Positions 19,106-43,200 of a stretch of 64,000 nt of DNA are shown piece after piece. The position numbers and the translations under genes were made by a program. Positions within the stretch are counted from its first letter, which is position 1. Each line of letters starts with the position of its first letter. Under the pieces are notes generated by a model. The model saw only the letters and a program-made list of their open reading frames with translations, made no database searches and was not told the DNA's origin. The stretch is from assembly GCA_946965045.2 (NCBI GenBank), contig OX337229.1, positions 6,200,001-6,264,000 on the forward strand, written 5' to 3'. Origin of the DNA: Epithemia pelagica (Eukaryota > Protista > Bacillariophyta).

Positions 19106-19645
19106 TGTTACAATTCTTTCTGAATCGTAGGGACATTGATGCTCGGTAGAGCAGACAATCAGGTAGGTCACCAACCGATACAAGCTTCTCAGGGTCAGAG
19201 AAGCAAGCAAGTCGAAGTCTATCAGAAGGATAGTCGGGACACAAAAGAGGATGTGATAAATGGTGATATTGTTAGATTGTGTGTTGATTACTACGATAGG
19301 TCTACGTGAAATGTTCGGTCCTGCCAAGGGTCATGTGTCATAGGTTCTTGGCGGCAACAGGTTTGGAATAGTTGGAGTCGATTCATGTGATGTATATGAC
19401 ATGTATATGTGGGCGGATAACATATACAGGGTCAACAGCTCTTGCTTTGGGTTGGCATAGTTGTTTTCATGGCGCGCAGCTTGTTGACAATTTCATGATT
19501 TGCGAAGAAATATAGGTCGATATAGCGCGAAGCTAGGGAACATAGCTCGAAGCTAGATGGCATGATGCGATAGCACGAGGCTATGTGACATGGGGAATCG
19601 ATGAGATGTAGAATCTAACCACCATAGACGGTGAGAATTCTAACA
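19106..19645 (-). repeat. 3' LTR of Copia element 1
   Basis: Apparently identical by eye to 26464-27003. Confidence 0.96.
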
Positions 19646-22600: not shown

Positions 22601-25327
22601 CTGAAGAGTATTGACAAACTGTTTGGTTGACTTGATCCCATAGATATCAGTAACCAGAGTATCTCGACCAACAAAGATTTGTGCGACTTTACCGCCATGG
22701 TCAACAGCAGGGGTGTCGGAGAAAACCGAGTCAGTAGCAACGGGTTCATGACGTCGAGGTATATTAAGGACCGGATTGCGAGCCTTGAAATGTTTCTTGA
22801 GGGTGTCGTGGTCAAAAGTAATGCTACCATTACGTGTAGTGTGCTTGAACGTATCGGCAATAACATCTTCAGATTGCCAACCAAAGAATGGACGGAACTT
22901 CTTCCAGTCATACGCTTCCTGGTAACGACGGTGGACAGAGGCATGAAGTGTAGGATCATTACCTTCTGCGTCAGCATAGATAGAAAAGAAGGGTGCGTCG
23001 TCAGGTCCATGATCGTATGGGAGATCCAAAAGGAGATTGAGGTTACAAACAACACGATCAGTGTACTCCCCATAGTTGTCATATGGATGGTTCGACATAC
23101 TACCATCAGTCTTGACGTGTTTCCAATCAGGATCATTGTCAGAGGGTGTGGGAGAATACGAATGGTCCAGAACACCAGGATCCCATGTGTTGGGTGACGT
23201 GAAGATGATCTGAGGTAAGGTATCCATGTCATCGTCGCTGGGGATACCCAAGGAGTGGATATAGGCTAACCCATCCTTGATGTGAAGGGGTATGGCACGA
23301 CCATCAAGTGTAGTGATGCGTTGTTTACCATCAACTTTAACAGATCGTTCATCAACAGCAAGTCCGAAATGCTCGAATTGACCAGGAGCATGGATAGATA
23401 AGCCCTTTCCATAATAAGCATATTCATTGAAGATGCCGACAATAGGTCCGTCATTGGTCTCAAACTTTGCGGCACATGTGACGACAGGAAGTCCAGTAAG
23501 TTCATGGTTATCAATACCCACAATAGTGATATGGCGGCCAGTCTTAGAAAGGATGCGCATGTCAGAACCAGCAAGTCCTCCATTAGCACCACGGTCAATC
23601 AATTGATTTCCTGGTAAAGTAGATTTCCTGGAAAACAAATAGCGTGGAACATGTCCTGCTTGTTTATGCATGTTGGCTTTGAAAGTAACCTTCTTGCTCG
23701 TCTTGGACTTGGCGTTGGAAAGAACACTAGTCAGGTCAGTTGCCGGGTGATTGATATCAGTCGTCATGGCTTGGTTGATAAATTGTGTAACCGGATCTGA
23801 ATCATCTGAATGCTCAGGGACTACGCCAGGTGAGTTGTCATCAGATGCAACTTGGTTGGGGTCAGGGTCAGGTTCCGGATCAATGTCGAGGGCATGTGTT
23901 TGCACTTTCCTCGGTGTTGTTGATGAAGGTGCTTGAATCATCTTGTTATACTCAATGATCAACTTGCGATCTTCTTCAGAAAGTTTGAACCATAGGTCAC
24001 GCGGTAGACTAACCTTGGACGAAGAGGATGGAGATTCAGATGTCGCTGTGGTGTTGTGGACATGATACTCCATATCATCTTGTGAGGTTATGTCAGCATC
24101 TGTATCTTGGCCATATAGTGATTCATGTTGTTTGACATGTCGACGGCGACTATGAACAGATGACTGGGTTGCTTGATCATGGTCATAAGCTGCGTCTAGA
24201 AGGAGACGGAAGTATGATTGATAGCAAAGGGATTTTGCACCGGATTTGGTGTTCACCACATTATCCAAGATCTTGACTCGGCGGAGATCAGGTACCTTTT
24301 CTACAGCTTGCATGAGGAAGGTCATCCTGGTATGATCAGGGATGCGATCAGACAATGTCACTAGATTGTCTAGCAAACGTAGCTGCTCTTGAAAGTGTAG
24401 AAGAAATTGACGTGTTGTTCCGCGCCATGTGTCGTCAAGACGTAGATTGGAAATGTAGTTGGTTAAACGGAGGACTTCTCGCTTTGCTAGGTCGGATTCG
24501 GTATGCAAAGAGTGTAACTTCTGCAATACGGCACGCGCATCTTCATCATGTTCATGTTCACGTACATAGGCTCGACCTTGGTCAGTCTGAATGATACGGA
24601 CAAGAACGGAGTAAAGAAATACTTGTTGCTCTTGAAAAAGTTCTTCGGCATACTCATCATCATGGGGTGGTGTGTATTTGAAATTCAGAACGTTGGATAG
24701 GCCTTGAGCCTTAGCTGTAGTCTTGAATACACGCCAGAATGAATCGTAGTATCGTTCATCCTTGAATACCTCATATGCAGTTGCGTCGCGCTTAGTTCCC
24801 TTTCTGAATGCTGTAAGGTCTTGTTGAGATTGGGATGCGGCAGTAACTGTGCTGACAGATTTCGCAGATGACGGTGACTTCATTGGCGAGACTGGGACTT
24901 GGCTAGGTGGTCCCTTAGAGAAATCTGTGTTGATCCTCCAAGTGTTGAACTCTTTCCTCGTTAGGTTCATCCAGTCGCTATTGGATAGCTCGTCTTGAAT
25001 TTCATTGGTCTTGTATGTGGCCCAATAAGCCAAGAGCTTGATCTGCTGTCTTGTGGGGCCTTGTAGATCATGTGTCTGTTTGTTGACCTTGTATTGTGTC
25101 AGTTCCTTCATGGATTCCTCGGTATTAGTTTGCATATACGAGATAACATGGGTAATGTTCTCAAAACCATGGTATTTCATCCACTTCATTAAGTAGTCGG
25201 CCCTTTCTTTGGTGAAGAATTGGCAGACAGTAAATATGATGTGGTCGAATAGGTCTGTGTCCGAGACATTGTCTTGGTTATCTTCTCCCTTAGGAGTCGT
25301 AGGTGTCTTGGGTGATTGAGGATCCAT
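19640..25327 (-). CDS. Copia Gag-Pol polyprotein (1895 aa)
   Basis: Protease DRGANGG; integrase core ATDSVF...ISDGG...NKAENRYQ; RT HKARLVADG and YVDD; RNase H DWYSKRQSTVETATYGSEF...NPADILSK. Copia domain order. The stop codon falls in the first 6 bp of the 3' LTR (TGT TAG). Confidence 0.96.
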   Translation of the reverse strand: MDPQSPKTPTTPKGEDNQDNVSDTDLFDHIIFTVCQFFTKERADYLMKWMKYHGFENITHVISYMQTNTEESMKELTQYKVNKQTHDLQGPTRQQIKLLAYWATYKTNEIQDELSNSDWMNLTRKEFNTWRINTDFSKGPPSQVPVSPMKSPSSAKSVSTVTAASQSQQDLTAFRKGTKRDATAYEVFKDERYYDSFWRVFKTTAKAQGLSNVLNFKYTPPHDDEYAEELFQEQQVFLYSVLVRIIQTDQGRAYVREHEHDEDARAVLQKLHSLHTESDLAKREVLRLTNYISNLRLDDTWRGTTRQFLLHFQEQLRLLDNLVTLSDRIPDHTRMTFLMQAVEKVPDLRRVKILDNVVNTKSGAKSLCYQSYFRLLLDAAYDHDQATQSSVHSRRRHVKQHESLYGQDTDADITSQDDMEYHVHNTTATSESPSSSSKVSLPRDLWFKLSEEDRKLIIEYNKMIQAPSSTTPRKVQTHALDIDPEPDPDPNQVASDDNSPGVVPEHSDDSDPVTQFINQAMTTDINHPATDLTSVLSNAKSKTSKKVTFKANMHKQAGHVPRYLFSRKSTLPGNQLIDRGANGGLAGSDMRILSKTGRHITIVGIDNHELTGLPVVTCAAKFETNDGPIVGIFNEYAYYGKGLSIHAPGQFEHFGLAVDERSVKVDGKQRITTLDGRAIPLHIKDGLAYIHSLGIPSDDDMDTLPQIIFTSPNTWDPGVLDHSYSPTPSDNDPDWKHVKTDGSMSNHPYDNYGEYTDRVVCNLNLLLDLPYDHGPDDAPFFSIYADAEGNDPTLHASVHRRYQEAYDWKKFRPFFGWQSEDVIADTFKHTTRNGSITFDHDTLKKHFKARNPVLNIPRRHEPVATDSVFSDTPAVDHGGKVAQIFVGRDTLVTDIYGIKSTKQFVNTLQDNIRFRGAMETLISDGGSSLISQKVKDILRTLLIGEYRSEPYHQHQNKAENRYQTVKRMTNALMNATGCPANTWLLCLEYVCDLLNHTSSPTHSGRTPLEALSGRPPDITHLLFFPFWDEVYYRVDPAEPNSGSYPSSSDEKLGHWVGFAHNVGDSFTWKILTQDNQIIYRSAVRRVESTTPNLRVDRPSGEDSSEKDDNDKQADTVFIRSDSEDPSKPMSTIDFDDMIGRTFLCDTEENGELHRARVIKRVIDLNEEATKQEERVKYIYRKTNSDVDEMISYNQLMEYIERDNQAQTSGDNLFRFRDVIAHQGPLNTTDPDYKGSKYNLLVDWETGETTYEPLSLIANDDPITVAIYGKKHGLLNEPGWKHLKRYVKTSKRLIRAAKQSRIKQVHHSVKYKFGFQVPRNYEEAVALDKQHGNTKWQDATELELSQIQSYKTFKDFGKAIFIKGKVSNAPEGYHKIRVHLVFDVKHDGRHKARLVADGHLTKEPVETIYSGVVSIRNLRIALFLGTLNDLEIWGADIGNAYLEALTGEKIFIVAGPEFKELEGHILIIYKALYGLKSSGARWHDVLFDVLTDMGFSPSKADPDIWMRKAPGEDCYEYIAVYVDDLAIISIDPGNICKILKEKYNFKLKGDGPIDFHLGCCYTKDSDGTLVADPRRYIGKMMDTFERIFKEKPKKAKTPLIGGDHPELDDSELLDEEGTSHFQTLIGQLQWVITIGRFDVFTATMTLSRFRAAPRKGHLDRAKRIYGYLAHLPEGAIRFRIGEPDYSSLPTQEFDWTRTVYSNASERIPEDCPTPLGRYVTTTHYVDANLMHDIVTGKSVTAVLHLLNGTPIDWYSKRQSTVETATYGSEFVAARTAIDQITELRHSLRYLGVPIRERSYMYGDNRSVVLNATVPHSILSKRHHLLSYHRVREAIAAKYVAFYWKDGKTNPADILSKHWDFVSIWPMLKPLLFWKGEVQDLNKSNDDKAETTSCGEC

Positions 25328-26463: not shown

Positions 26464-27003
26464 TGTTACAATTCTTTCTGAATCGTAGGGACATTGATGC
26501 TCGGTAGAGCAGACAATCAGGTAGGTCACCAACCGATACAAGCTTCTCAGGGTCAGAGAAGCAAGCAAGTCGAAGTCTATCAGAAGGATAGTCGGGACAC
26601 AAAAGAGGATGTGATAAATGGTGATATTGTTAGATTGTGTGTTGATTACTACGATAGGTCTACGTGAAATGTTCGGTCCTGCCAAGGGTCATGTGTCATA
26701 GGTTCTTGGCGGCAACAGGTTTGGAATAGTTGGAGTCGATTCATGTGATGTATATGACATGTATATGTGGGCGGATAACATATACAGGGTCAACAGCTCT
26801 TGCTTTGGGTTGGCATAGTTGTTTTCATGGCGCGCAGCTTGTTGACAATTTCATGATTTGCGAAGAAATATAGGTCGATATAGCGCGAAGCTAGGGAACA
26901 TAGCTCGAAGCTAGATGGCATGATGCGATAGCACGAGGCTATGTGACATGGGGAATCGATGAGATGTAGAATCTAACCACCATAGACGGTGAGAATTCTA
27001 ACA
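26464..27003 (-). repeat. 5' LTR of Copia element 1
   Basis: Apparently identical by eye to 19106-19645. Confidence 0.96.
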
Positions 27004-27471
27004 ATGCGCACGCCTAGCTTCAGCAGAGACGTCTCCAGCGCATACCTGGTTCCAGCAGAGAGGACCTGTTGCTGGCCTGCCTGGAGCTGTCTATTGTCCG
27101 ATGTCAGTCAACGTCAACAGTCAAGCCTCCCAACTACCAGCAACCCAAAATAATACAATCATCCCTTTGAGTTTCGGTCTCGAGTCCAACGTCGCGGTTT
27201 TCTGGTGAGGTGTGAGAGGCGAGAGGCGGATCTTATCTACAATAATAGGAGTAAATATTCGTATCTCTATAGCCTATAGCCTCAAAGAGTACCTGGTAGA
27301 TATCCCACGCCCCAGGCGGCTTCTGGGGAATTTATCCCTGGTGGCTACCGCACATTCTCTAAGTCAAATCCAGTCAATTTTCCGATTCTTTCCCGCCAAG
27401 ATGCAGAGGATTGGCGCTTATAATAAATAATACAGATCAGAAAACCGAAACAGCAAAGAGTGTGAAGGTTA

Positions 27472-27505
27472 CAAGCTGAGTTCAGGGAGTATGTTCCTGA
27501 CGTAG
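27472..27505 (+). repeat. Left TIR
   Basis: CAAGCTGAGTTCAGGGAGTATGTTCCTGACGTAG preceded by TA. Confidence 0.9.
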
Positions 27506-27776
27506 ACCCCTCGTAGATTTAGTACCATAAAATATAATCCTCAATAGCGTTTGGCCTGACTAGTGAATGAAAGTGTCCGACTCGTGACAACCCAGTGTCT
27601 GAATAATAAATTTTTTATTCGTACCGTGATGTGTGACAGCTTCCGAACGCTGAATTCCGTCGAAAATGATGAAAAAACGGTTGTTGTCTAACGACCATGG
27701 TGGAGGGCCATCCCAACCGCCTACCTTGTAGCCGAGCTGCATCCGGATGCTTTAGGGTTTACTTGAACCACCCTCA

Positions 27777-30700
27777 ATGGCGCTACAAGGTACGGGGTTG
27801 GCATCATACTCAATGACGCGATCATCCGACTCATCCCACGCAACACAGTCTCGGATGGAACGAAGTTTATCGGCACAAGAGATTCTTGACGTCTTTAAGA
27901 CGCAATGCTCCCCATCCTCGTTTGGGTTCTGCAACAAGTGGATCCAAGACACCCAGATTGTGAACTTCATGCACACTTGGCTGCCAGGACTGTCGCCATT
28001 CAGACTGAATCTTGTTTTGACTAAAGATGTTGTTCTTAAACTCTGTTTCGAAACTAAGGTGTCGGAATCAAACAAGTTTGGCTGGTACCGCCACAAAGTC
28101 ACAATCCACAATAAAAGATACACATTCTTTTATGTAAGCTCCGACACAACAACAGGGCCAGTGATGTTGGACGATCATCAAGAATGGCTGGAGGCTGCAG
28201 CCGAGAATGTGATTCGGCGGTCGGGACGAGCGAAGCCAACGAAGCGAAGGAACGAAGAGTCACCAGGGTTGCGTGAAGGCACGCTAAATACATCCAAGCA
28301 AGCAAGAAACACTTCAACTCCACCAGCAATCAAGAGCACTGCAACGCAGCAACATGGTCAACCGCCACAAATTGGAGACAGCCCTACCGAAATGCAAACG
28401 TCACCACCTCACGACAACACAAATCAGGTGCTTGTTGGAGCAATCCAACATCCTGAATTGGCCACAGACGAAATCGGCCATGACCATCCACAGAGTTTGC
28501 CGATTGGTTTTTCAGTTTTCGAGAGTGAGATGATCCAAGGTCTATCGCAACAAATGGAAAGCGCCTGTTTTGATGAGCCAAGGAACCGTAGGCTCTTTGC
28601 TGGCAAATGCGATTCTCCAGGATTGTCAAAACAAAATCTTGAGCGATGGATAGAAACCCTTGAAAGGGCCATTTCCAACGTGGAGGCACTTCCGAATGTG
28701 GTTAACAAGGGAGACATCTTCCCCCTCAACCAGGAACAGCAACAGAGGGTACTGCTCAAGGCAACGTATTTATAACTTTCTTATAAGATAGCGTTGCTTG
28801 ATATGCCACACGGTCGTACATGGCTGAACTGCATAAGCGAAGCCATTAGCAAAATGGAACAGATTTATGGTGAAAAAGTAAAAAAACATCCCAAGACCAT
28901 TGCTCGTTTTCACAGGTACTTTCGGGAAAACGACAGTTTCCCTCATCCCAACTACCACGTTCATATTGGGAAAGAGCCATCGCCCGTCATATTCGTTCAC
29001 ATACCTGAAGCAAAGGTAAAGTTTGAATGCTGGGCAAAGGAAAACCTGAGCACTCTTACAACAGAGTCTGCTCTAATGTACCTGAGGACAACATTGCTTC
29101 CGGATATGCATACCATGATCGTACAAGAGTGCATGGATACGAATGCAACGCCAGTATCGTACGAGGCCTTCTTGGCATCGATGAAGCTTTCCACCATTTC
29201 GCAAAGCACAGCGTGGCGATGTATTGCTGCTGCAGGGTTCGTGTTCAAGGAACACACGAAAACATACTTCACTGATCGACACGAAAATGCTGAGAATGTT
29301 GCCCACAGAGCTGCTTTTGTCAAGAAGTACTTTAAGTGGGAAGAGCTGTCGTATCGGTGGGTGCAGCTCCCTACCGAGGATGCAATCAAACTTGAAAACA
29401 AAGGGAATGCGGGCAAGGAGAAGCTCTTGCCAAACAGCTTTGTATTTGAGTACACTGATGTAACAACAGGCAAGCAGATGCGGGAGTACCATGTTGATGC
29501 CTTCCCAAGCGAATTTGAACGGTACATCAAACCAGAAAACACAATTCACAATGGAAACTTGTCACACAGGTTTCCCTCCGACCGCAAACCTGTCATCCTC
29601 ATCGGCCAGGACGAATCGATCTACAAGCAGTTTTCCTTCTCGTCTAAGGCATGGTACACTAAAGATGGCGCAACTAAAATGCTGCCAAAGGATGATGGAC
29701 ATGGGATGATGATCAGCGCTTTTGTAAGCCGATCATGGGGCTTCCTTATGAACGGAAACCCGTTGCTTGCTGCGAGTCGATTTCGGATTAATGAACTCCG
29801 TCTACATGCGACACACAACAAATACGTCTCTACCGAGGCTGCAGTGAACCTCAATGGTCACACTGCCAAGACTCCAATTACCAATGCCCAACCGTTCACT
29901 CGCTTTTTTGAATACGGAGCAGATAAAGAGGGATATTGGAATTATGAATACATGGCCTTGCAGTTGGAGGATATTGTCGATTGCCTCGTGGTCATGTTCC
30001 CCGCCCATGACTTTGTCTTTTTGTTCGACCAAAGCAGTGGTCATGGAAAACAACAATCCGATGGGTTCAATGCTCTGAACATGAATAACGACTGGGGAGG
30101 AGCTGTTCCCAGCATGCGGGACACACAAATTATTGATCAAGCTTGCCTTGGCCCGTACAACCATGACGACAAACTACGAGTTGGTGACGTACAACACCTC
30201 GTCTATCAGGAGAACGATCGTGGTCCAGTTGCTAAAAAAGGCCATCGTCTCAATGACGCGCAGCGTGTCGCATCGAAGAATACACACCGAACTGGTAGAA
30301 AGAAAAAGCGCAACCTCACAAAGAAGGAGCTCATGGCAAAACTTGTCCGGGTCATGGGACCTGGAATGCAACGTTCATTTCAATCGAAAAATGCTGGTGA
30401 ACTACAGGACCTTTGTAAACGCTCCAACATTGCAACGGTGATTGAAGATGATGTGATCGAGGAAGGCTGGATGAATGCTGCAAAAGGGCTCTTTCAAGTG
30501 TTATGGGAGCGGGGGTGGATAGACCCTAACAACATGATCAAGTACGTCAAGACAACCAGAGATGCATGGTGGGAAGCGGATAAGAAGACTGTGAAAGAAG
30601 CCTATCAGGCGGACTACAAAAAGTACTCTATGGTTCATCTGATGAGCGAATGCTCCGATTTCAAGAACGAAAAATCTGCAATGGAGAAGCTGGCGGAAGA

Positions 30701-31121
30701 CTTGTCTGAACGACATCGTTGCAGGATCGAGATTCTCGTATCGACCAAGTATCACTGTGAAATGGCCGGTGAGGGGATCGAGTATGGCTGGGGTTACTCA
30801 AAAAAAGTCTTTCGTGCTTTCTCACTGAATGAGAAGAAAGACAAAGCTGCCTTTTTACGATGTTTGACAGCAAGCCTGAAGAAAACAACACCCGAAATCA
30901 TGCGGAAAATGTCAGCAAAGGCACGTCGCTATATGCTCGCGTACTTGTTATACGATCAAAATTCCAACAACAGAGACTATGCAGCTGCGGGCCTCTCGTA
31001 TGCCGAAATTGAAAAGATGTCAAAAGCAATCAAGTGTCACCGATCCGCCTTCGACCAAGATCATGGCTTCATCTCACGTCTCTGGAGAGAAACGCAAGGA
31101 TCTGGTGCAGTAGAAACCTGA
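27777..31121 (+). CDS. DDE transposase (IS630/Tc1-like, long catalytic insert); about 1114 codons interrupted by an in-frame TAA at 28773-28775
   Basis: ORFs 27777-28775 and 28794-31121 share a frame (KATYL*LSYKIALLDMPHG). HTH-like ISQSTAWRCIAAAGF; catalytic motifs GQDESIY, FLFDQSSGH, KGLFQVLWERG and KYHCEMAGEGIEYGWG (equivalent to Tc1 SPDLNPIE). Confidence 0.82.
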
Positions 31122-31531
31122 TCTAATCTCCATTTATCATCAAAATGCATGTAACTTAACTATTTATAACAGCAATCCATTTTATTGAATGTATTTCTTG
31201 TCAGTTATTGGTATCAATGATCACTTCCGTGTTGCGTGCTCGTGTTGCGTGTTGGATTATCAGTTTGTAAGTTCCTCGAAAATGTGAGAGAGCGAGAAAA
31301 TGGACGATTTTCGGAGCAGACCTCGCGCGAAACACGCCTCCCTCTCCGAAAACGCGCACGCATCGCAAAACTGGCACGCAAATCCTTAAGTAACTCAGCC
31401 CACATACCAAAACTTCACCGTTTTTTAGTATGTGAGCTCAAGATTTTTTTTGGAATGTGAGCTGAGGGCTGAGGAGAATGCTGCGTTTCGTGTTTCTTGT
31501 GTTTCGTGTTTCGAGTTTTTGCGTTTCGACC

Positions 31532-33469
31532 ATGGGGAAACCAAGCCCTAAGAAACAGTATTCAAAAGCAGGCGCTCAAAAACGAGACAGCATGAGTGAC
31601 AAAGGAAATCTTGACGCTCTTATACTTGCAATAGATGCAGCGGAAGAGCAGTCAGCCAAAGCAGCAGCGGCGCCCGAAGCAGCAGCAGCCGCAGCACCCG
31701 AAGCAGCAGCAACAGACGAAGCGACAACAACAAAGCACCATCGGTTTCTTTCGGATCAAGACTTTGCCGAAGTGAAGGATAAAAAGCTTGCAGATGTTCG
31801 GCGTGGCCATCCAGAGAAGGACCACAGCAAACAGTATTCGGAAACTCAAATGCGGCAGCTCCTCATCGATACGCGCACAGCGGACTACAAGAAAGGCATC
31901 GAGGAAGTGGAGAAACTCCCTTCTCGTTCTGGACGGGATCCAATCAGGACTTTCACCGAAGGCCTCAAGACGCTCTCCAAGATCAAAGACAGTGCTGTAC
32001 TTGCCTGTGCTATGGGAGAGTATGTCTCACGGAAGATTTCGGCCACTTTTTCGGTCCAAGAAGCTCCAATTCGGAAGCCCGGTTCTGGCTTGCAAAAGGG
32101 GAAGATTGTGCCACTTTCAAGTGGAATGGGTCTCCCTGTCAAGAAGAACAGAAAACATACCTTCCCGATCGGCAAGCATGTCGGTTACACATTTGCGAAC
32201 AATCCGGTAGTCAAGATCTACCTTGGAAAAGTGCTTCTGTTTGAGGTGAAGGAGTCAAAACTCCCAGGCGCCGGGTTTGGCGTTTTTGCAGTTCGGACAA
32301 TCAAAGATGGTGAAGTGATTGGTGCGTACACGGGAAACGACGTCACGTCTCGGACAGTTGTACCCGACGAGTACGCGATTCAGTTCGGACGTGACAATCG
32401 AAGGCTTCAAGCAGACAACGACGATCACTTCTGCATGGGGCTGCACTTAATCAACGACCACCTACACCATCGGTACGGTACAGACAATCCACCGGATGAA
32501 TCGGATGATCATTACAACGTGAGAATCATGCCGAATCTTCTAGTCAAGGCAATCAAGCCGATCAAAAAGGGCAACGAGCTGTCTTTGTTTTATAACCTTT
32601 CGGACGAATCACCGACGTCCTCCGAACAGGTTATCCGACCGTGGACGAAAGGTGACGACGACGAAGACGAGGGAAAGAAACGCGGTCGACCCAGTGATGA
32701 AAATGAAGACGACGGGAAAAAAACAAAGAAGGCTTTCGCTACCTCTTCTACTACTGTTTTCCGCCCAGTTGCTGCTGTTGCTCGTCCTCCTGCTCTTCCT
32801 TCTCCGCCTCCTCCGCAAGACGTTTCTGGGCACTACAATTCGCCCCCTCAGCTGCCACCACATCATCCTCCGCCGTATCATCCTCATCCTCCGCCGTATG
32901 ATGATCCACCGCATCATCCTCATCCTCCGCCATATTATGATCCACCGCATCGTCATCATCCTCCGCCATATTATGATCCACCGCATCGTCATCATCCTCC
33001 TTCGTATCATCCTCCGCCGCATCATCATCATCCTCCTCCTTCGTATCATCATCATCCTCCTTCGTATCATCCTCCGCCGCATCATCATCATCATCATCCT
33101 TCGTATCATCATCATCCTCCTTCGTATCATCCTCCGCCGCATCATCCTCCGCCGCCGCATCATCCTCAGCCGCATTACCATGGGCATCCCCCGTCCTATA
33201 ATCAACCCCATTATGGAGGAGGTTACCAGGGGGCTCTGCCTTTATCGCAGCAACAACAACGCACGACCCAGCCGGTCGTAGGTTCACCGGAGCGTCCGAG
33301 CAATCCCGTCCCACCTGCAGCACAAGCTCAACCCGCCACTCGACCCGATCGCTCCCTTTCTGGAATGTTAGTACGAGTAATTGCCTTGCCAGAATTTTCA
33401 GAAAGTGACACCACGGATGACAATTCTTTTGATCAGGAGATGTCGGATGATCTTTTGCTCCGGAGATGA
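31532..33469 (+). CDS. SET-domain protein (putative lysine methyltransferase) with His/Pro/Tyr-rich repeat tail; transposon cargo
   Basis: SET motifs EVKESKLPGAGFGVFAVRTIKDGEVIGAYTG, HLINDH and VKAIKPIKKGNELSLFYN. First plausible ATG at 31532 within ORF 31478-33469. Confidence 0.82.
   Translation: MGKPSPKKQYSKAGAQKRDSMSDKGNLDALILAIDAAEEQSAKAAAAPEAAAAAAPEAAATDEATTTKHHRFLSDQDFAEVKDKKLADVRRGHPEKDHSKQYSETQMRQLLIDTRTADYKKGIEEVEKLPSRSGRDPIRTFTEGLKTLSKIKDSAVLACAMGEYVSRKISATFSVQEAPIRKPGSGLQKGKIVPLSSGMGLPVKKNRKHTFPIGKHVGYTFANNPVVKIYLGKVLLFEVKESKLPGAGFGVFAVRTIKDGEVIGAYTGNDVTSRTVVPDEYAIQFGRDNRRLQADNDDHFCMGLHLINDHLHHRYGTDNPPDESDDHYNVRIMPNLLVKAIKPIKKGNELSLFYNLSDESPTSSEQVIRPWTKGDDDEDEGKKRGRPSDENEDDGKKTKKAFATSSTTVFRPVAAVARPPALPSPPPPQDVSGHYNSPPQLPPHHPPPYHPHPPPYDDPPHHPHPPPYYDPPHRHHPPPYYDPPHRHHPPSYHPPPHHHHPPPSYHHHPPSYHPPPHHHHHHPSYHHHPPSYHPPPHHPPPPHHPQPHYHGHPPSYNQPHYGGGYQGALPLSQQQQRTTQPVVGSPERPSNPVPPAAQAQPATRPDRSLSGMLVRVIALPEFSESDTTDDNSFDQEMSDDLLLRR
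32850..33200 (+). repeat. Imperfect tandem repeats encoding (H)nPPSY/PPPYYDPP units
   Basis: CATCATCCTCC and TTCGTATCATC units repeated many times. Confidence 0.9.
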
Positions 33470-34494
33470 ATGCGATCGACGAGTTAATGCAGGAGGGTGA
33501 ATGGCAAAAGCAACAGATGTTGCAAAATAGAAAATTGCGCAAGAAGTATTTCAAATCGCTATACGATAGTGAAAACAAAATCTATCGAGGCTGTTTTTTT
33601 ACAACGCCGCCAGACCTCCTCCAGTTGCTGGAGCAAGTGTGGAAAGGCAAACACCTGAACAGTAAAGGAAAGGGCACCTTTTTCAAATCTGTTCAAGACT
33701 ACACCCCAAATTTGTTGATGGCGATGATGGAACATGAGGGCATGGTGGCCAACACTCGGTACTTCAACGACTGCGACCCAGAACATGTCCAAAAAGTCAC
33801 GACAGATTTCAAGCAGTTTCTTGCCTCAGCTCTCCATGGAATGAAGTACGCAAAAGATGAATCATTTGCAGACCAAATGAGCATTCACCTTTCGCTTATG
33901 AAATCCACTCGGGAAGAAGTGCAAGAACCTCACATCGACTTCTTGTTCCCGGCCGTAACAGGAAACATGTCCGAGAGTCCAAAAACACCATCCGGGAAGC
34001 AACAAAAAAGCAAAAGGATGACTCGGCGATCGTTCTCAGATCTGCCACTCCGGGAACGCATCCTTTTCATTGTTTTTATGCCCCTGACGGAGGAGGGTAT
34101 GTCCATTGAATTGTGGAGCTACCGTGCTGAGAAGCACGAGAACTATACGCATGAGTTGGGTAACGTGGTACAAATCCCGTACGGCAAGTTTCTCCTCGTT
34201 CGAGGAGATACTGTCCATGCTGGTGGCTTTAAGACTGGAGAGCTGGGAAATCCACGTGCACATTTTTACGTGTACCAAGGAAAAGATGGGACCATCCACG
34301 ATCCCATGCCAAAGAACAGCTACAATCTACCTTCTGGACAAAGGCTTTCAGAGTGCTACTTCCATCAAAAGGACATTCCTGGTGATCGCCCAAGTGGGAT
34401 CATTCGGGTTAACCTTACGCTCGATGGCCATCGCGTTGCCGTCCAGGGTGATTATCGTAGAGTGCTTCTGGCTAAGAAAAAACCTGGTATTTAG
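33466..34494 (+). CDS. Putative 2OG-Fe(II) dioxygenase (HxD...H); transposon cargo
   Basis: SLMKSTREEVQEPHIDF (HxD), FIVFMPL strand, LLVRGDTVHAGG (distal His), NPRAHFY (Arg for 2-oxoglutarate). This is a double-stranded beta-helix signature; the substrate is unknown. Confidence 0.72.
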   Translation: MNAIDELMQEGEWQKQQMLQNRKLRKKYFKSLYDSENKIYRGCFFTTPPDLLQLLEQVWKGKHLNSKGKGTFFKSVQDYTPNLLMAMMEHEGMVANTRYFNDCDPEHVQKVTTDFKQFLASALHGMKYAKDESFADQMSIHLSLMKSTREEVQEPHIDFLFPAVTGNMSESPKTPSGKQQKSKRMTRRSFSDLPLRERILFIVFMPLTEEGMSIELWSYRAEKHENYTHELGNVVQIPYGKFLLVRGDTVHAGGFKTGELGNPRAHFYVYQGKDGTIHDPMPKNSYNLPSGQRLSECYFHQKDIPGDRPSGIIRVNLTLDGHRVAVQGDYRRVLLAKKKPGI

Positions 34495-35002
34495 ATCGCG
34501 AACAAAGAAGCCAATCAAACTTAGATCTTTCCTTGTGGTGAAAGTGTGTTATTGTTGAAAAAGAATACCATGGTACGTTGAGTTGCAGTATGACATTAAG
34601 ATTTACTAGTTTATTCCTTCATTTTATACTTTAGTACATTGTCGTGTTGTGTCGAAAACGCAAAATATGAGATAAGAATCATAGCTCGTCTGGGACCAAT
34701 CACAAACTCCCTCGTACATCCATACGAGGCGTGCCCGCAAACCGGGACCCAACTACCGACACTGGCAAGCTGGATAACGACGATGACGATGATGATGAAG
34801 AGGACAAACAGGATGAGCGATGATAGCTACAACAAGGACGACTACAATACAACGACGACAATGATAGCCACGACAATGACGAGGACTTGGACGACGACAA
34901 TGATGATAATCACAACAAGAATGACTGTAGAAGCACTACCATGATGACAAATCGATTCATATTTAGTGATTAAGGATACCTAAAACGTCCATCAGTAGAT
35001 AT

Positions 35003-35909
35003 CTAGTACGCCTCGTCCTCATGATCCAAGTAATCGGGACCAAAAAGCCCGTTTTGCTGCGTACCGATGAAGTCTTCTTGGGTCTCAAGAAATCCATCAT
35101 CGGCATACAAATCAATGGATGTCCGGTATGCACGGGAAGGATCGCTAAAGAACAAAGGAGGAGACGACGGGATGTTTTCTCCCAATGCCAGCGACTCATT
35201 CAAAGTCTGGCGAGGGTCTGTCGCTCCACTTTCCTTCACCTGTTCCTCAGCAATCCGACGCTGGAAAGCATGCTTCTGGGAGGGGGTCAGTGCGAAAGCT
35301 CGAGACGCCACCTTCGGGGAAGAAGTTACTTTCTTCGGGGTCACATAAGACTCTGGAGTCTTGTTCTCGACGTCGTCCTCCTTCTTGATCTCCTTCTCGG
35401 GCTTGCTGTCGGGCTTGTTGTCGGGCTTGCTGTTGGGTTTGGTGTCTGTGGCAGCAGAGGGCGCGTCGTGAGAAAGGGAGACTCAAAACCAACAATGAAC
35501 AATCAAACTTACCTTCTTTGCCGACAGCCTCGATCGCAAGGAGCTCTGCCGCGATATCCGACAGGTTAGCGCATTCGACGTCCTTGTTGCTGACGAAGAA
35601 CACTGGGATACCATCTTCATCCCCAATGGTGAGTTGCCACTGTTTTGCGCGCTCGTGCCACGACGAAGGACCCTCAAGGTTGAAGGTCACATGCTTCTTT
35701 GTCGAAGCGGGAGACTTCGTCGTCGTCGTCTTCTTCTTCTTCGACGTTTTGTTGTCCACGGCCGTCTTTGTCTTCATTTTCTTGTTTGCCTTGTTTCCCT
35801 TGTTTCCCTTGTCGGAGGGAAATGCGGTTGTGGAGGGAGCTGCGGCGGAGTCCTCCTGCTCCTTCTTCGCAGACTCAGCTCGTTTGGTAGCACTACGCGT
35901 CTGGCGCAT
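35003..35909 (-). CDS. Hypothetical Lys-rich/acidic protein, 2 exons (35909-35513, 35445-35003); transposon cargo
   Basis: 67-bp GTAAGT...CACAG intron joins MRQTRSATK...AVGKEG to DTKPNSKPD...YVTPKKVTSSPK...DEAY* in frame. Confidence 0.65.
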
Positions 35910-36080
35910 CGTTGGAAAGTGAGAACACAATAGGGATTCGTTCGTTTGATTGTTGTGTTTGTTTGTTTGATTGTTGCCCGCTCTCCGTTCTTGTGTCATC
36001 TAGGGAATCCCCCCGCGCTCATTCGTGAACAATATCGGCGCGCGCCACAAAATCAACTTGCAGCATGAAGCAACTTCCGA

Positions 36081-36653
36081 ATGACCCGCCGTGCAATGGA
36101 ACAATCAAACAGAGACGACAGGAAGAGGCAAGGAAGAAGAAACAAGATGACCAACATGAGGACGAAGTTCGAGTTCAACGAAGAGGATGGCCGTGAGGGT
36201 GGTGCTGGTCTCCCGTTCAAGTCGTGCTTTTATGCCAGCGATGTTTGCGCGCTCATCGGGCCCATGTCGAGAAACAAGGACACTGGCCACAACATCGTCG
36301 ACCGTGGCCATCTGCTTGTGCAGCGGGAGCTTGCGACCGACTACCTACGGATTGCAGTCTTTGACCGGGATGCAACAAGCGAGCATGAGGAACCAGCGTT
36401 GGTTGTTCCAGTTGGGTTCATTGCTCTGTCGCACCTGGACCAGGTCTCTGGAAAGACGAGCAAGAACGGACCTCCCATGGGACGCATCCGCCTCTACACA
36501 CGCTGCTCCATCAACCCTAAAGCCTGCATGGAACCCCAGGTCGTTACAATCTACATGGGCAGCAAGGATATGGATCGCTTCAACATTTCGCTTGGTGCGA
36601 TGATGCTCAAGCACCCGCTTCAAAATCTCTTCTTTAATCATCAACAAGCCTAG
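36081..36653 (+). CDS. Hypothetical 190-aa protein; transposon cargo, divergent from the previous gene
   Basis: ATG-initiated ORF with globular-looking composition; no family recognised. Confidence 0.5.
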   Translation: MTRRAMEQSNRDDRKRQGRRNKMTNMRTKFEFNEEDGREGGAGLPFKSCFYASDVCALIGPMSRNKDTGHNIVDRGHLLVQRELATDYLRIAVFDRDATSEHEEPALVVPVGFIALSHLDQVSGKTSKNGPPMGRIRLYTRCSINPKACMEPQVVTIYMGSKDMDRFNISLGAMMLKHPLQNLFFNHQQA

Positions 36654-37247
36654 ATAGTGAACAATGTAGCAGCGTTTTATGATTATCATTTGAGTAGGAT
36701 CTTCATTCTCTATGAATACAATCTAATTCTATAGTTGTGTTACGTTTACCGTACAATACATTGCGTTCAGGTACGGCTGTGTGAGTCACAACAAAGAAAA
36801 GAACATCAATCTTTGTTGTGAACGACGCAACTTCTAGTCTAAGTTCCATATATCTAACGAGAAGAATATCAATTTTTGACGTGAACAACGCTACAAGTGT
36901 TCATAGTCTTTGTTCTATCTTCTATCATTCGATTCTACAATAGAGGTGCATTGGTTGCACCAAGTTTTGCCGTGAGTCGCCGTAGTAAATCGCGCGGCGA
37001 CCACCTTCAACTAGATAAAACGACACCTACAAAACGAATGCAGCGCCGACATCGTTCTCCATGCTCAACCCATGAATGGAGAAGAGGTTCAGAGCACGGG
37101 ATCATGGAGCCGTCTCCTATTTGGCAAGAGATCGGTCAAAAGGACCGTTCACCATGGTCAATTTTTGGTAGAACGGTAGAGGCATAAATAGAAGGGCTAT
37201 ATTAAGGGGATGGCTCGCGCGGATTACGTAGATTTCTTACTGGAGCG

Positions 37248-37281
37248 CTACGTCAGGAACATTCTGTCTGAACTCAGCTTG
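37248..37281 (-). repeat. Right TIR
   Basis: Reverse complement is CAAGCTGAGTTCAGACAGAATGTTCCTGACGTAG; followed by TA. Confidence 0.9.
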
Positions 37282-37879
37282 TAGTTTAGTTTCCATCTAT
37301 CAACCTACTTTTCATCCTCCAGTGTCTCGGCTCGCTCTCATCCACGCTGGCCCTTTTATACGTGACTCAACATTTAGTTAGAGCTCTCGGGATCTAAGGC
37401 GCGACACGCGCAGCTCTGCGAGCCGTTTGATACTCGCCTTCTCACTTCTCACATTTTCTGTTAGTAGCGTCCGATTGTCAAGAGTGTGCACAAAAGTCTA
37501 AACTGACCCCCTTTCCATAATGGCACGCTATGGAATGTTACCAACAGGTTACGCCCGTATAGGCCCAGCGTCGATGACCGTCATAAGGCTGTGGCTGTCC
37601 GTAACCCCAGGCGCCGTTGCTGGTGGTGGAACCAACGACAAAACCGTGAATGCCTTCACCATTATTCGCAACAATTTGCCGCAAGAACCCCTTGTTGAGT
37701 ACGGTGGTGGTACATATTGCAGAGGAATGACGACTCACTATGCTCTACAGGAATTAATTTAGGATAGGTAAGTGAGTGAGTGAGTGCCAAAGAAGAAACA
37801 TCCACAGTGCGCACAAGGACAGTGGTGTAGCTGCTGATGTCCAAGATTTCTCGACTCGTCGTTTTGGTGGAGTTTTTTA

Positions 37880-39280
37880 CTAGGGAAATTCATCATTCAA
37901 AGGTTTCCACGCCATGACCCGGGGGCGTGGAGTGTTGCTGTCGTCCTCCACCACTTGTTCGGCTCCCACCATGATCATTAATAAAAAGGCTTCGTACACG
38001 AAAGGATTGTCCACCACCAGGTCCCATTCCAATCGAGTCGTATTGCAAACAACGGTAGGAGTTTTGCCATTCGCCGCCTCGGCCGCCACGTGAGGAGGAC
38101 AGAGGGTTTGACCCTGCGTCCACTCCGAAATGAGCGTGGCTTTCGGAGTAGCAAAATTGGCCAAGGCACTTGCATTGGCAATGGTCACGGCCTGTTCGCC
38201 CCACGCCTCGACAAACACTTGAATGGTCATTCGACAAATGGGTGTGGCTACATAAACGGACACGGCCGTGGCTTGGCCTGGCATTTGAAAAAAGACAACT
38301 TGATGGGCTCCAAACACATTGAGAATGTAGAGGGAATTGGCACACGACGAATCGAATCGAACTTCTTGCAAGAGGGTCGAAGCATCTCGGACCGTCGCAT
38401 TGGCCGGCCACACACGAATTTGCGTCCGATTCGGCAAGGGTTGACGATTATTAAACAAAAAGTACAAACTGTCTTCTTGCACAATGCCCTGAAAGAGTGG
38501 TGGCAGGGCATTCCCAGCGGAACCACCGGGGGCGTCGCCCGGATCGGCATTGGCCACAATATGGGCCGATTCACCCGATCCCAAGGAGGTAATGCCGCCA
38601 TACATGCCCACTTTTTGCGGAAAATCGGTACAGGTATAATCCTGAATAGGTTGCGAGGTAAAGTTTTTTATCGCACAATCACCACCGCGAAACAAGAACC
38701 CGGTCAAAGAGGGTGGTTCGGTACAGACACCATTCAAGGTTGATGCGACACAGCCCGTCAAGTAATTCGTCATGGTAATGTCCAACCCCAGAGCCTGCGT
38801 CGGATTGGAAGAAGGACTCGTGGATGGGACAAGGGATGTGGTGGGCACGACCGAAGGGAGCAAGGACTGTGTGGGAACACTGGAGGGTGTCCACGAAGGA
38901 GATTGTGTCGGAAGTGCGGTTGGATTCGTCGCAGTGTCATTGTTGTCGTTGTCGGTTCCGTCGGGATTTGTATCGGCGTCCGTACTGGCACTCGTCGTAC
39001 CATTGTCTTGTTGGTCCAGGACGAGGGCGGTCGTGACGACAATCACCACCACGACAACGAGCACTACTGCCAGAACAATCCATAGAATGGGAGTCCAGGA
39101 CATGCGACGACGACTCGATTGTCCTCGACCTTTGGTTGGTTCATTGGCTTGTTCTACTGTCGCTTGCTCGTGCGCTGCTGGTTGTTCTTGTGGTTCGACG
39201 AGTGCGGTTTGTCGGCGAAACTTCCATGGTTTGTCCTTCCAGGACCATGAGCTCCGAGATGGGTTCGGGGTGGACGCCAC
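37880..39280 (-). CDS. Type II single-pass membrane protein with S/T/P stalk and Cys-containing ectodomain
   Basis: TM ILWIVLAVVLVVVVVIVVTTALVL; PTQSPS/PSSVPT mucin-like repeats; GGDC...CTD...CANS ectodomain. Confidence 0.65.
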   Translation of the reverse strand: MASTPNPSRSSWSWKDKPWKFRRQTALVEPQEQPAAHEQATVEQANEPTKGRGQSSRRRMSWTPILWIVLAVVLVVVVVIVVTTALVLDQQDNGTTSASTDADTNPDGTDNDNNDTATNPTALPTQSPSWTPSSVPTQSLLPSVVPTTSLVPSTSPSSNPTQALGLDITMTNYLTGCVASTLNGVCTEPPSLTGFLFRGGDCAIKNFTSQPIQDYTCTDFPQKVGMYGGITSLGSGESAHIVANADPGDAPGGSAGNALPPLFQGIVQEDSLYFLFNNRQPLPNRTQIRVWPANATVRDASTLLQEVRFDSSCANSLYILNVFGAHQVVFFQMPGQATAVSVYVATPICRMTIQVFVEAWGEQAVTIANASALANFATPKATLISEWTQGQTLCPPHVAAEAANGKTPTVVCNTTRLEWDLVVDNPFVYEAFLLMIMVGAEQVVEDDSNTPRPRVMAWKPLNDEFP

Positions 39281-40261: not shown

Positions 40262-43200
40262 TTAGAGGTGTGCGGGATTGGTCCCATTGGTAGATAAGGA
40301 CGGAGGACCGCCTGCCCCGAAAGCGGCCGAATACGTAAACTGCGAAATGAGAATATTCCGACGTTCCCGTGGTAAGATCTTGGTGAAAAGATCAGCGATG
40401 TTGGATTCAGTATCTTCCTTGCCCACACGGATAATAGATGCCGCTGCTGCCTCGCGTACCGAGTGGTAGTTGATAGCATTGTGCCTCTTGCTCAAGACTG
40501 AAGACGGGAGACTCGTGTTTTTCACGACACCCCGGTTGTCACAGAGAACACTCGCCGGACCAACCAAAGGAACCCCAAACATCCGAAGTTTGTACCGTAA
40601 TGCGACGATCATTTCCTTGGCGATACGAAGCGCGACAAATTCGCTGCCAAAACTTGAAGTCTCAACGGTATTTTGCCTCTTGGAGTACCACAAGATGGGA
40701 GCATTTTGCACAAAGATGAGTATACCGGTGTGAGATCGACGAGTGACAACGTTTCCAGCATGGTCAGCATCCACGAAACATGTGATACTGACAGGACGCC
40801 CCAATGGTGGAGGCATTTTACTTGGAATCTCCTCGGCAACTTCGCCGTAAAACTCTTTCCAATCGTCAATTGGCACTTGGGGAAAACATGACTCATCCAG
40901 CACCACGTCCTTTGGATCAAAGACCAGCTTCAGCTTCGAGTGCGACTTGAGGAAAGCAAATATGTGATAGACTGCCTCCAAGTGACCGACCCTCGGGTTT
41001 GCCAAGAATTGTGAAAGAATGGACACTTCCAAGTAGATGTCCACTCGCCCAATCTCCACGGCCCAACGTAACACACCAATCAACTGTTGATACCGCGACG
41101 TTAATGCTGCGTTGAGTTCTGGGGTTGTGTCCAACTCCGGCTTGTAAGAAGAGACAACCGGTACCTTGGCCGTCGTTTTAAGGTGTTTCCCGTCCCCGTC
41201 TTCCTTGAGAAGATCTTCCACGATTCGAATCGCGTTGGCGACATATTTTTCACTGGACATGCCCCATGCCCATGACCCGCTTGGCAAGTTGTGTTTATAT
41301 ATCTGAGCGCCGAGATACACTGTTGGCTCACCCACGCTCCCTGCTTTAATCTTGTAATGTTTATCAATCTCGTCAAGTACCGGATGCGGATCTTCGCTTA
41401 CCAATAGTATGTCATCCACATAGACTAATATGATCTCATAATATTCCTCTCCCGAGCTTCTCCTCGCCTTCCTCCGTAGGACACATGGATCCGCTTGGGT
41501 GTCAATGAAACCCATATCATAAAGGGTCACCATGAGCGTGGCCCGCCAACTTGCACCGGAGGATTTCAGCCCGTATAGGGCCCTTACCATGACACAGACC
41601 TTTCCCTGAAACTCGTTCCCCACTTCCGGACCCCCATGAAACCAAATCTTCTCTCGACATGGCGCATTCAAGTAGGCATTACCTATATCACACGCGAGTA
41701 CCTTTAGCCCATTGAGTGCGGCAATGAGGAAAGCAATCCTGATTGAGTCTCGGCTGACGACGCTCGAGTAGGTCAGGCTTGACGGCGCGTCAGTCATATG
41801 CCCCCCTGCCACGAGCCGTGCCTTCCTGGTAAGATCCATTTTTATGTCAAAAACCATATGACATTTAATTTCCGTATACCCGATGAGCTGCCGCCCTGCC
41901 CGTACCTCTTCTAGATCCAGATCGTCCCTCGCTTCCCATGCTACCTTCACTACCCTGAGCTCCTTGTCTATCGCATCCCTCCAGAAGGTAGTTCCAGTTA
42001 CCCCATCAATCTTTAGTGCCTCTTCAACCGAATGGGGTAGCTTTATCCCATATTTCTCCGTGGTCTTCCAATATTTCTTCTTCACTTTCTTCACCATCCG
42101 ACGCATATGGTTTAGCGTCTGTGGCACCCACCACTTGAATGCTGGTTCTTCCACTAGTCCTTGTGCGACCGCGTACTCTGCCAACTCGACTGCGTACCCA
42201 TTTTTCGCGTCCCTAAGAGGTATCCACATTTGCGTCCCGTCTCGACATTCGACAGCTATTTCCCATCCTTTCGTCGTTTTCTTCGGGTGCCGATTCCCGT
42301 TCTGTCCCACATGGTATCCGTCCTCGATGGCCACAGCGTCCCCGTTTTTCCTGTGACCGACGATCTCCTGTATAACGACGTATCTCTTTCCCTCCGTGTC
42401 CAGCTGTGAATAGAGATTTTCCGCCACCAAGTTGGCAGTGTATTCCTGTATCACGCCACCAGGAAAGCTTACCTGGTACGTTCTTGTGTCGAATTTCGGG
42501 TTTCGATTGAACTTTCCTACTGGCTTGCCATCTAACCCTTTTTGCCGTTTTTCCACTGTGCCAAACATCTGCTCACCTCCCATCTCGACTTGTATCTGTG
42601 CTCCGATGTACTCGTCGTATCCTTCCCCGTGCAAATCGGCCTCATCTGTCTCCTCGACGATCATGTCACCATATTCGTCGTCCGTTGGGACGATCCCGAC
42701 ACGTCCCCGTCTTTCCTCTTCCGGTTCTACATCCTCGAGATAACCCGGCCCATTTCCTTCTTCATCGGTGAAATTCTGATCGTCTAACCTCTCCTCAACA
42801 ATCAACTTGAATTGTTTGACCCTTTCGGCAATGTCTGGCTTTCCCATATCTTCTTCCGTGACATGTTGCACCGTTGTCCGAGCAATCACCTTTCCCCCCT
42901 TTGTCAAGATCCAGTAGCAAAGGTCACTCCCGATTCGATGCGCAATCCCTAACCAGTATCCCAGCTGCACGAGATCGTCCGCTGCATCTGTTTTGGCATT
43001 GTTGTGAAACCACACGAGGTCATAGAAGGAAAAATCAATCCACTCCGAGATGTCCGGTGTATCTCCTGAGAGTCGTTCTAAGCCGGAACGGCCGTCATGT
43101 CCCCGGGCGACTCGACTGAGTACACCGGCCTCGTAAACAAGACCATAGTCCCAAAGCCTTCTTGGGACATGAAGATCCATGGCACGTCTGTGCCACCTCT

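Follow-up and report, generated by a model that had tools for sequence, protein, structure and literature searches.

Tc1/mariner elements are textbook minimal transposons, in which accessory genes are rare. The element described here was found in a stretch of 64,000 nucleotides of the genome of the diatom Epithemia pelagica (contig OX337229.1, positions 6,200,001 to 6,264,000), hereafter called the window, and combines a Tc1/mariner-like backbone with an unusually large cargo. The window copy measures 9,810 bp and was recognized from the nucleotide sequence alone (hereafter the original prediction). Like the Tc1/mariner elements Mos1 and Sleeping Beauty, it has a TA target-site duplication, short terminal inverted repeats (TIRs), a cut-and-paste architecture, and a transposase with their catalytic fold (Z-scores of 14.7 and 13.6, respectively). 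In contrast, the transposase of the window family is about three times longer and has no Pfam match, and the elements are 9.7 kb long and bear three extra genes, whereas Tc1/mariner elements are 1.3-2.4 kb long and bear one gene.

For the cargo, the closest described systems belong to other groups of transposons. A first one is found in Phytophthora, whose HarbingerS and MuDR elements bear a SET histone methyltransferase gene, according to the part of PMC12730594 in which Kojima and Jurka (Repbase Reports 2014) are cited. As in the window family, a stramenopile DNA transposon thus carries SET as a conserved accessory gene; however, the transposase belongs to another superfamily, and the SET domain of the window family is fused to a 2-oxoglutarate (2OG) oxygenase and accompanied by two more genes, the SET domains being likened by description. 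A second one is the PAG cassette of red-algal Plavaka, Mutator, and Zisupton elements, in which PAG2 combines an N6-adenine methylase with a SET domain and PAG3 combines a ParB-like domain with a 2OG oxygenase (bioRxiv 10.1101/2025.02.11.637652). This cassette moves between transposon families, and the best template for PAG3 is of the PhyH type (bioRxiv 10.1101/2025.02.11.637652). In both systems, a large DNA transposon bears SET as well as 2OG-oxygenase genes as joint cargo, and PhyH-type folds are the nearest ones. In contrast, the window family has a single SET-oxygenase polypeptide, a Tc1/mariner-like backbone, and diatom hosts, a comparison that concerns domain architecture only; PF01555 and ParB domains were found by Pfam in none of the element proteins. 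Thirdly, fungal KDZ/Plavaka and other DNA transposons encode TET/JBP dioxygenases, presumed to counter epigenetic silencing (PMC12730594). These too are 2OG-Fe(II) oxygenases on DNA transposons, although the oxygenase of the window element is not TET/JBP-like. Lastly, SETMAR (Metnase) of primates joins SET and a mariner-type transposase in one genetic unit (PMC2847698), as the window family does, but it is a host gene with a captured transposase fusion, whereas the window family is a mobile element with SET as a separate gene. A literature search of limited reach retrieved no paper on the diatom lineage of the window or on a Tc1/mariner-type element with such cargo. The combination, which the original prediction did not know from any TA-duplicating element, has more precedents than was supposed there, as SET (PMC12730594, in the part mentioned above) and SET together with a 2OG oxygenase (bioRxiv 10.1101/2025.02.11.637652) are on record in other superfamilies.

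The window very probably contains a recently inactivated copy of a multi-copy cut-and-paste transposon that is active at present or was so very recently, and that represents a strongly diverged branch, associated with diatoms, of the IS630/Tc1/mariner group, with intact members of 9.72 kb carrying four genes. The ends of the element were as predicted (Table 1): the two 34-bp TIRs are identical at 31 of 34 positions, an equal match was obtained in none of 100 shuffled sequences, and TA duplications are present. TA was found on both sides of each of the seven full copies, whose flanks are unrelated, as well as of the relatives L003 and L005 and the metagenomic relative L032, and the terminal motif CAAGCTG(A/G)(G)TT(T)CA is common to the window family and to L003, L005, L006, and L032. 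All other copies of E. pelagica were drawn from one contig-level ENA assembly of the same organism. Six further full copies (L002 and L009-L013) of 9,721-9,724 bp display 99.94-99.99% mutual identity, being only one to six substitutions apart. Each of them is flanked by TA on both sides, lies between unrelated flanks, and contains intact open reading frames (ORFs) of 1,088, 967, 250, and 190 amino acids. The presence of six near-identical, intact copies at unrelated sites indicates very recent transposition by an autonomous element. Other full-length copies with the same gene set, which the original prediction had named as a check, thus exist at six unrelated TA sites. In a further copy (L001), the SET gene is interrupted by a Copia-type long terminal repeat (LTR) retrotransposon; this insert (L001:14747-23162; RVT_2) carries a 636-amino-acid ORF upstream of a gag-like ORF of 501 amino acids. 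L008 is the same insertion locus as that of the window in the contig-level assembly of the same genome; it was reached through the flanking gene and is not independent.

These copies also bear on the idea that SET, oxygenase, and the other ORFs are ordinary genes of the host, enclosed by accident by two independent small elements or by inverted repeats that arose by chance. The window copy alone could not exclude this, the more so as it is located in a stretch rich in transposable elements, between two Copia elements. However, an identical internal order in seven full copies with unrelated flanks and TA at both ends of each, together with the occurrence of the same genes within the own TIRs of the diverged elements L003 and L005, leaves this explanation a negligible probability.

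The window copy itself is defective. The transposase was read there as two ORFs (27777-28775 and 28794-31121) that lie in the same frame and are separated solely by the TAA codon at 28773-28775. Both pieces are homologous to a single protein of 1,050-1,100 amino acids, in a paralog as well as in more distant homologs, about 80 of which were found, mostly with lengths of 950-1,100 amino acids. The first of the four passenger ORFs that the original prediction had listed next to a DDE transposase is therefore the N-terminal third of that transposase; the transposase was rightly recognized, the number of passengers was not. The stop codon is private to the window copy. Indeed, the paralog P0001 (97% identical) and the L002-type copies are uninterrupted at this site (1,053-1,088 amino acids), and genomic contigs from three runs of the organism (X1-X3) all have a C at position 28773, giving CAA. 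A 39-nucleotide GT...AG intron spanning the TAA codon was considered as well and rejected, since CAA is found at this site in every other copy and in the dominant genomic contigs. In addition, a 4-bp deletion splits the fusion gene that encodes SET and oxygenase. The dominant genomic contigs (X1-X3) have an extra CAAT after position 33450, and its addition turns the SET and oxygenase ORFs of the window into one stop-free frame of 1,006 codons. In the L002-type copies, SET and oxygenase form a single ORF of 967 amino acids, and its 90% cluster consists mostly of members with 948-970 amino acids. From these reading frames, SET and oxygenase, taken as separate passengers in the original prediction, are predicted to be one fusion protein in intact copies, the 4-bp deletion being private to the window copy. 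The TIRs of the window copy are still good. Compared with the L002 type, the window copy is a mosaic: identity is 95.4% overall and mostly 99-100%, with 75-91% over positions 27770-28359 and 32460-34473. This pattern indicates recombination or gene conversion between subfamilies.

The transposase was classified by structure comparison, because sequence searches gave nothing useful: neither the window protein nor 28 homologs matched Pfam DDE_3, DDE_1, or Transposase_1 at E ≤ 1, and the transposase profile had no sequence match in the PDB. An AlphaFold model based on 28 homologs (predicted local distance difference test score, pLDDT, of 81.6; predicted template modelling score of 0.71) was aligned by VIA with the catalytic domain of Mos1 over 189 of 201 residues, with the Z-score of 14.7 mentioned above and a root-mean-square deviation (rmsd) of 2.7. 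Sleeping Beauty followed, with TnsB (Z 6.7) and ISCth4 (Z 5.2) as the next folds, and Mos1 also ranked first in Foldseek. Full-length Mos1 chains align across residues 7-721 of the model, albeit with an rmsd of about 12.7. The candidate catalytic triad consists of D273 (29610-29612), D412 (30027-30029), and E663 (30780-30782), in the numbering of the second ORF. D273 and D412 show no variation among the 28 homologs, and E663 is conserved in at least 90% of them. The model places D273 within strand 267-278, D412 after strand 406-411, and E663 within helix 658-674. Such a placement is expected for a catalytic triad; the candidate E663 is assigned from the position of that helix. The acidic residues occur in DE(S) and (F)D...H contexts, which we take to resemble Tc1/mariner motifs. 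As to the N-terminal bipartite helix-turn-helix DNA-binding domain typical of the IS630/Tc1/mariner group, 7 of the 28 homologs had weak matches to HTH_33 (best E-value of 0.002), located shortly before the core as they are in IS630/Tc1. The language-model neighbours of the transposase bear DDE_3. The core is under constraint in the comparison of L002 with L003, as reflected by a ratio of nonsynonymous to synonymous substitution rates (dN/dS) of 0.24 at a dS of 1.1. The N-terminal segment has a dN/dS of about 1; the row for the C-terminal end (Tpase_Cend) was disregarded, as it comprised only 45 aligned codons.

The spacing of the triad fits none of the named Tc1/mariner families. Indeed, it reads D...139...D...about 250...E, with 250 residues from D412 to E663, whereas in the named families (DD34E, DD34D, DD35E-DD41D, and pogo DDxD) the third acidic residue follows the second D at a distance of 30-41 residues. 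This gap, together with the lack of a Pfam match to DDE_3, DDE_1, or a mariner family and of a PDB sequence match for the profile, might mean that the element stems from another DDE superfamily that duplicates TA or another 2-bp target, its likeness to mariner being that of a generic RNase H fold. Such an origin is very unlikely in view of the Z-scores for Mos1 and Sleeping Beauty, which are far above those for TnsB and ISCth4, the DDE_3 domains of the language-model neighbours, the weak HTH_33 matches upstream of the core, and the TA duplication throughout the family. Based on fold, TIRs, and TA duplication, the transposase is hence filed as a Tc1/mariner-like lineage outside every named family, in line with the original prediction of a large TA-duplicating element with a transposase of this type.

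The SET domain foreseen in the original prediction was recovered by Pfam (PF00856), with 27.0 bits in the window, 26.7 in L002, and 25.7 in L005, at a gathering cut-off of 22.4. Compared with the window sequence, the copies of L003 and L002 show 84-94% identity and that of the L005 subfamily shows 30%, yet the latter still exceeds the Pfam cut-off. Canonical SET motifs are GxG, NH, and the tyrosine of ELxxxY. All five element-borne SET domains keep GAGFG, YxG, and ELxLFY, and all five have ND instead of the canonical NH. About 45 positions are invariant across subfamilies whose transposases are only 43% identical, and a profile of the five domains weakly matched PR/SET and EZH2 SET domains. 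From these motifs, methyltransferase activity is plausible. Between SET and oxygenase, the repeat-rich linker contains in-frame insertions or deletions of 102, 54, and 51 nucleotides relative to L002.

The oxygenase and its 222 relatives (E ≤ 1e-3), some of which come from MMETSP transcriptomes, had no Pfam match; as with the transposase, PDB sequence searches were of no help either, and the enzyme was classified by structure comparison. The HxD...H...R motif announced earlier is present as H156 and D158 (33931-33939), H251 (34216-34218), and R264 (34255-34257); among 57 relatives, the first three residues are invariant and R264 is nearly so. The model (pLDDT of 84.8) displays the double-stranded beta-helix fold, in agreement with the dioxygenase fold of the original prediction. 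Foldseek returned 368 PDB matches at E ≤ 1e-3, the best 50 of which were almost all 2OG oxygenases, and VIA gave Z-scores of about 12 to PhyH-type enzymes (AsqJ, FtmOx1, AndA, and OkaE) and prolyl hydroxylases. The top match among the AFDB clusters was a diatom-type Fe2OG dioxygenase domain protein (E-value of 5e-16). TET/JBP structures, to which the original prediction had likened this enzyme, were absent from the best 50 PDB matches. A single entry named JmjC ranked 14th among the AFDB clusters (E-value of 2e-6), with none in the best 50 of the PDB. As modelled, the oxygenase is thus predicted to be a PhyH/prolyl-hydroxylase-like 2OG enzyme, neither of the TET/JBP nor of the JmjC type. Between L002 and L003, dN/dS is 0.67 for SET (dS of 0.13) and 0.5-0.66 for the oxygenase (dS of 0.23-0.34).

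Two further accessory genes complete the cargo. Firstly, the minus-strand ORFs 35999-35247 and 35344-35003 are joined by a predicted intron. The window, L002, L003, and L005 share the position of the donor G|GTAAGTT, and removal of an intron of 64-67 nucleotides restores one frame in each of them; the two ORFs are thus predicted to be one two-exon gene with a conserved intron. Its product has a conserved acidic C-terminus in the window, and its dN/dS is 0.32-0.47 (dS of 0.93-0.99; window versus L003). Secondly, ORF6 of L002 is fully (100%) identical to that of the window, and identity falls to 60.5% for L003 and 43% for the L005 subfamily; the dN/dS of ORF6 is 0.28 (dS of 0.95; window versus L003). 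It had no Pfam match, and a C2-like lead from a language-model search was weak, of low recognition, and not relied on.

Table 1. Features of the transposon in the window (positions are those of the window).
Feature	Position	Strand	Basis or remark
Left TA target-site duplication	27470-27471		TA outside both ends of all seven full copies, flanks unrelated
Left TIR, 34 bp	27472-27505	+	Identical in L001, L002, and L009-L013
Transposase gene, about 1,100 amino acids, pseudogene in the window copy	27777-31121	+	Two ORFs in one frame; intact in other copies
Private nonsense codon TAA (CAA, Gln, in other copies)	28773-28775	+	Homologs and genomic contigs
RNase H-fold catalytic core	29610-30782	+	Triad conservation and model match to Mos1
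SET-domain ORF, 663 amino acids, 5' part of the predicted fusion gene (SET domain 32273-32596)	31478-33469	+	Pfam PF00856
Pro/His/Tyr-rich repeat linker, 18/36-nucleotide units, length variable between copies	32789-33227	+	Direct-repeat families D1 and D2
4-bp deletion site, splitting SET from oxygenase in the window copy	33450-33451	+	CAAT added in genomic contigs
Predicted Fe(II)/2OG oxygenase ORF, 342 amino acids, 3' part of the predicted fusion gene	33466-34494	+	Fold and motif
Predicted two-exon accessory gene, about 309 amino acids (exon 1 35999-35513, intron 35512-35446, exon 2 35445-35003)	35003-35999	-	Conserved predicted splice site
Accessory gene ORF6, 190 amino acids	36081-36653	+	Conserved in L002, L003, and L005
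Right TIR	37248-37281	-	Inverted copy of the left TIR
Right TA target-site duplication	37282-37283		TA flank shared with full copies

The relatives of the window family show how this cargo is distributed. L003 is a copy of a subfamily with about 77% identity; it is 9,838 bp long, flanked by TA on both sides, and has the gene order of the window. L005 is an element of 6.97 kb, also with TA on both sides and with a related terminal motif, whose transposase is 43% identical; it carries the SET gene, the two-exon gene, and ORF6, without the oxygenase. Related transposases also occur in Fragilaria crotonensis (L006) and in a marine metagenome contig (L032), in elements of 3.5-3.7 kb that contain the transposase only. 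TA is clear at both ends of L032, and the TA/TIR ends of this element (L032:560-4273; CAGCTGGTTTCAC) resemble those of the window family; the ends of L006 are less clear. In a tblastn search of 80 metagenomic relatives, mostly on short contigs, no homolog of SET, oxygenase, ORF5, or ORF6 was found near the transposase. Many of the transposase relatives on the metagenome contigs L014-L093 form contigs of their own of about 3.2-4.2 kb, which is what simple multi-copy elements would give. Since the more distant relatives are transposase-only and L005 lacks the oxygenase, the cargo is best seen as a lineage-specific acquisition, in which SET came first and the oxygenase was fused to it later. Furthermore, dS shows the SET-oxygenase segment to be of much more recent origin than the backbones bearing it (0.13-0.34 versus 0.93-1.1), indicating that it has been exchanged between subfamilies.

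A SET-oxygenase pair was also encountered outside the family. The locus L004 (741-12904) spans about 12 kb and has long arms in inverted orientation (0.2-2.4 kb) at its ends, which consist of 193-bp tandem units, with 9.6 copies in the left arm and 2.9 in the right; piggyBac-like transposase fragments (PF13843) lie on its minus strand. Beside these fragments, a SET gene (37% identical) is followed by an oxygenase gene (44%), which is also the gene order of the window element. A search for a second copy of the L004 element returned the same locus only, and a target duplication was not made out at L004. It is conceivable, albeit rather doubtful, that the SET-oxygenase unit is a mobile cassette for tampering with chromatin, exchanged in diatoms between subfamilies as well as with unrelated superfamilies (L004), and that it may share ancestry with the red-algal PAG2 and PAG3. 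If true, it would point to an old, pan-algal toolkit of DNA transposons against host silencing.

Concerning the mechanism, the giant transposase of about 1,090 amino acids would recognize the element by its 34-bp TIRs, to which it would bind, cut it out, and reinsert it at TA; its core, as modelled, has the architecture of Mos1 and Sleeping Beauty, broken up by large insertions. The window copy would be mobile only if the transposase of an intact copy acted on its TIRs. The substrate of the fusion protein might be chromatin or some other protein, which it might modify either locally, at the element, or throughout the genome, and this might help the element to escape from host silencing or favour its expression or integration. 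Such a beneficial action of the fusion protein is a tentative proposal, possible rather than probable, and the role suggested in the original prediction, of a chromatin writer plus an eraser directed against silencing, is likewise tentative.

Several points weigh against the interpretation given here of a recently active Tc1/mariner-like transposon with functional cargo. As mentioned above, the transposase lacks a Pfam match, and the third residue of its triad is a candidate assigned from the model. For the reconstructed empty site, which the original prediction had named as a check, neither the window nor the retrieved loci yielded a paralogous match, and no excision footprint was seen there either. 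Concerning the cargo, all five SET domains carry ND instead of NH, the sequence and fold comparisons name no substrate for SET or oxygenase, and the dN/dS of both domains reflects only weak constraint.

Some of these points would also suit a cargo of passively captured, functionless host sequences that hitch-hike with the element, as in transduplication of the Pack-MULE type. Besides the dN/dS of SET and oxygenase, only 0.5-0.67, the ND-for-NH change might mean lost activity, intact ORFs in six copies that are 99.95% identical say little, and 80 metagenomic loci are without cargo genes, the elements made out there and that of F. crotonensis being transposase-only. Passive capture is nevertheless improbable, as it would have to account for a Pfam-significant SET domain with its invariant positions across subfamilies that differ so much in their transposases, for metal- and 2OG-binding residues of the oxygenase that are invariant or nearly so, for a dN/dS of 0.28-0.47 in ORF6 and the two-exon gene, the latter with its conserved intron, and for cargo genes that are full-length rather than fragments.

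This diatom lineage departs from the minimal plan of Tc1/mariner-type elements: its transposase is enlarged threefold, and its three additional conserved genes include one that fuses a putative protein-lysine methyltransferase to a 2OG oxygenase. The six near-identical, intact copies imply present-day activity and hence an experimentally tractable system, in which it may be studied whether diatom transposons bring their own chromatin modifiers against silencing and how such cassettes spread between element families. In addition, the element could serve as a TA-targeting vector for large cargo in diatom genetics.

As to the surroundings of the insertion, a direct repeat of 540 bp, 99.4% identical between its two copies (19114-19653 and 26472-27011), brackets an ORF of 1,895 amino acids on the minus strand (19640-25327). 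This structure is probably a young LTR retrotransposon, which ends about 460 bp upstream of the transposon. Downstream of the transposon, an ORF of 2,055 amino acids is located on the minus strand at 40262-46429. The gene directly downstream of the insertion (37880-39280, minus strand) encodes a product of 407-466 amino acids with an N-terminal hydrophobic segment and a region rich in threonine, serine, and proline.

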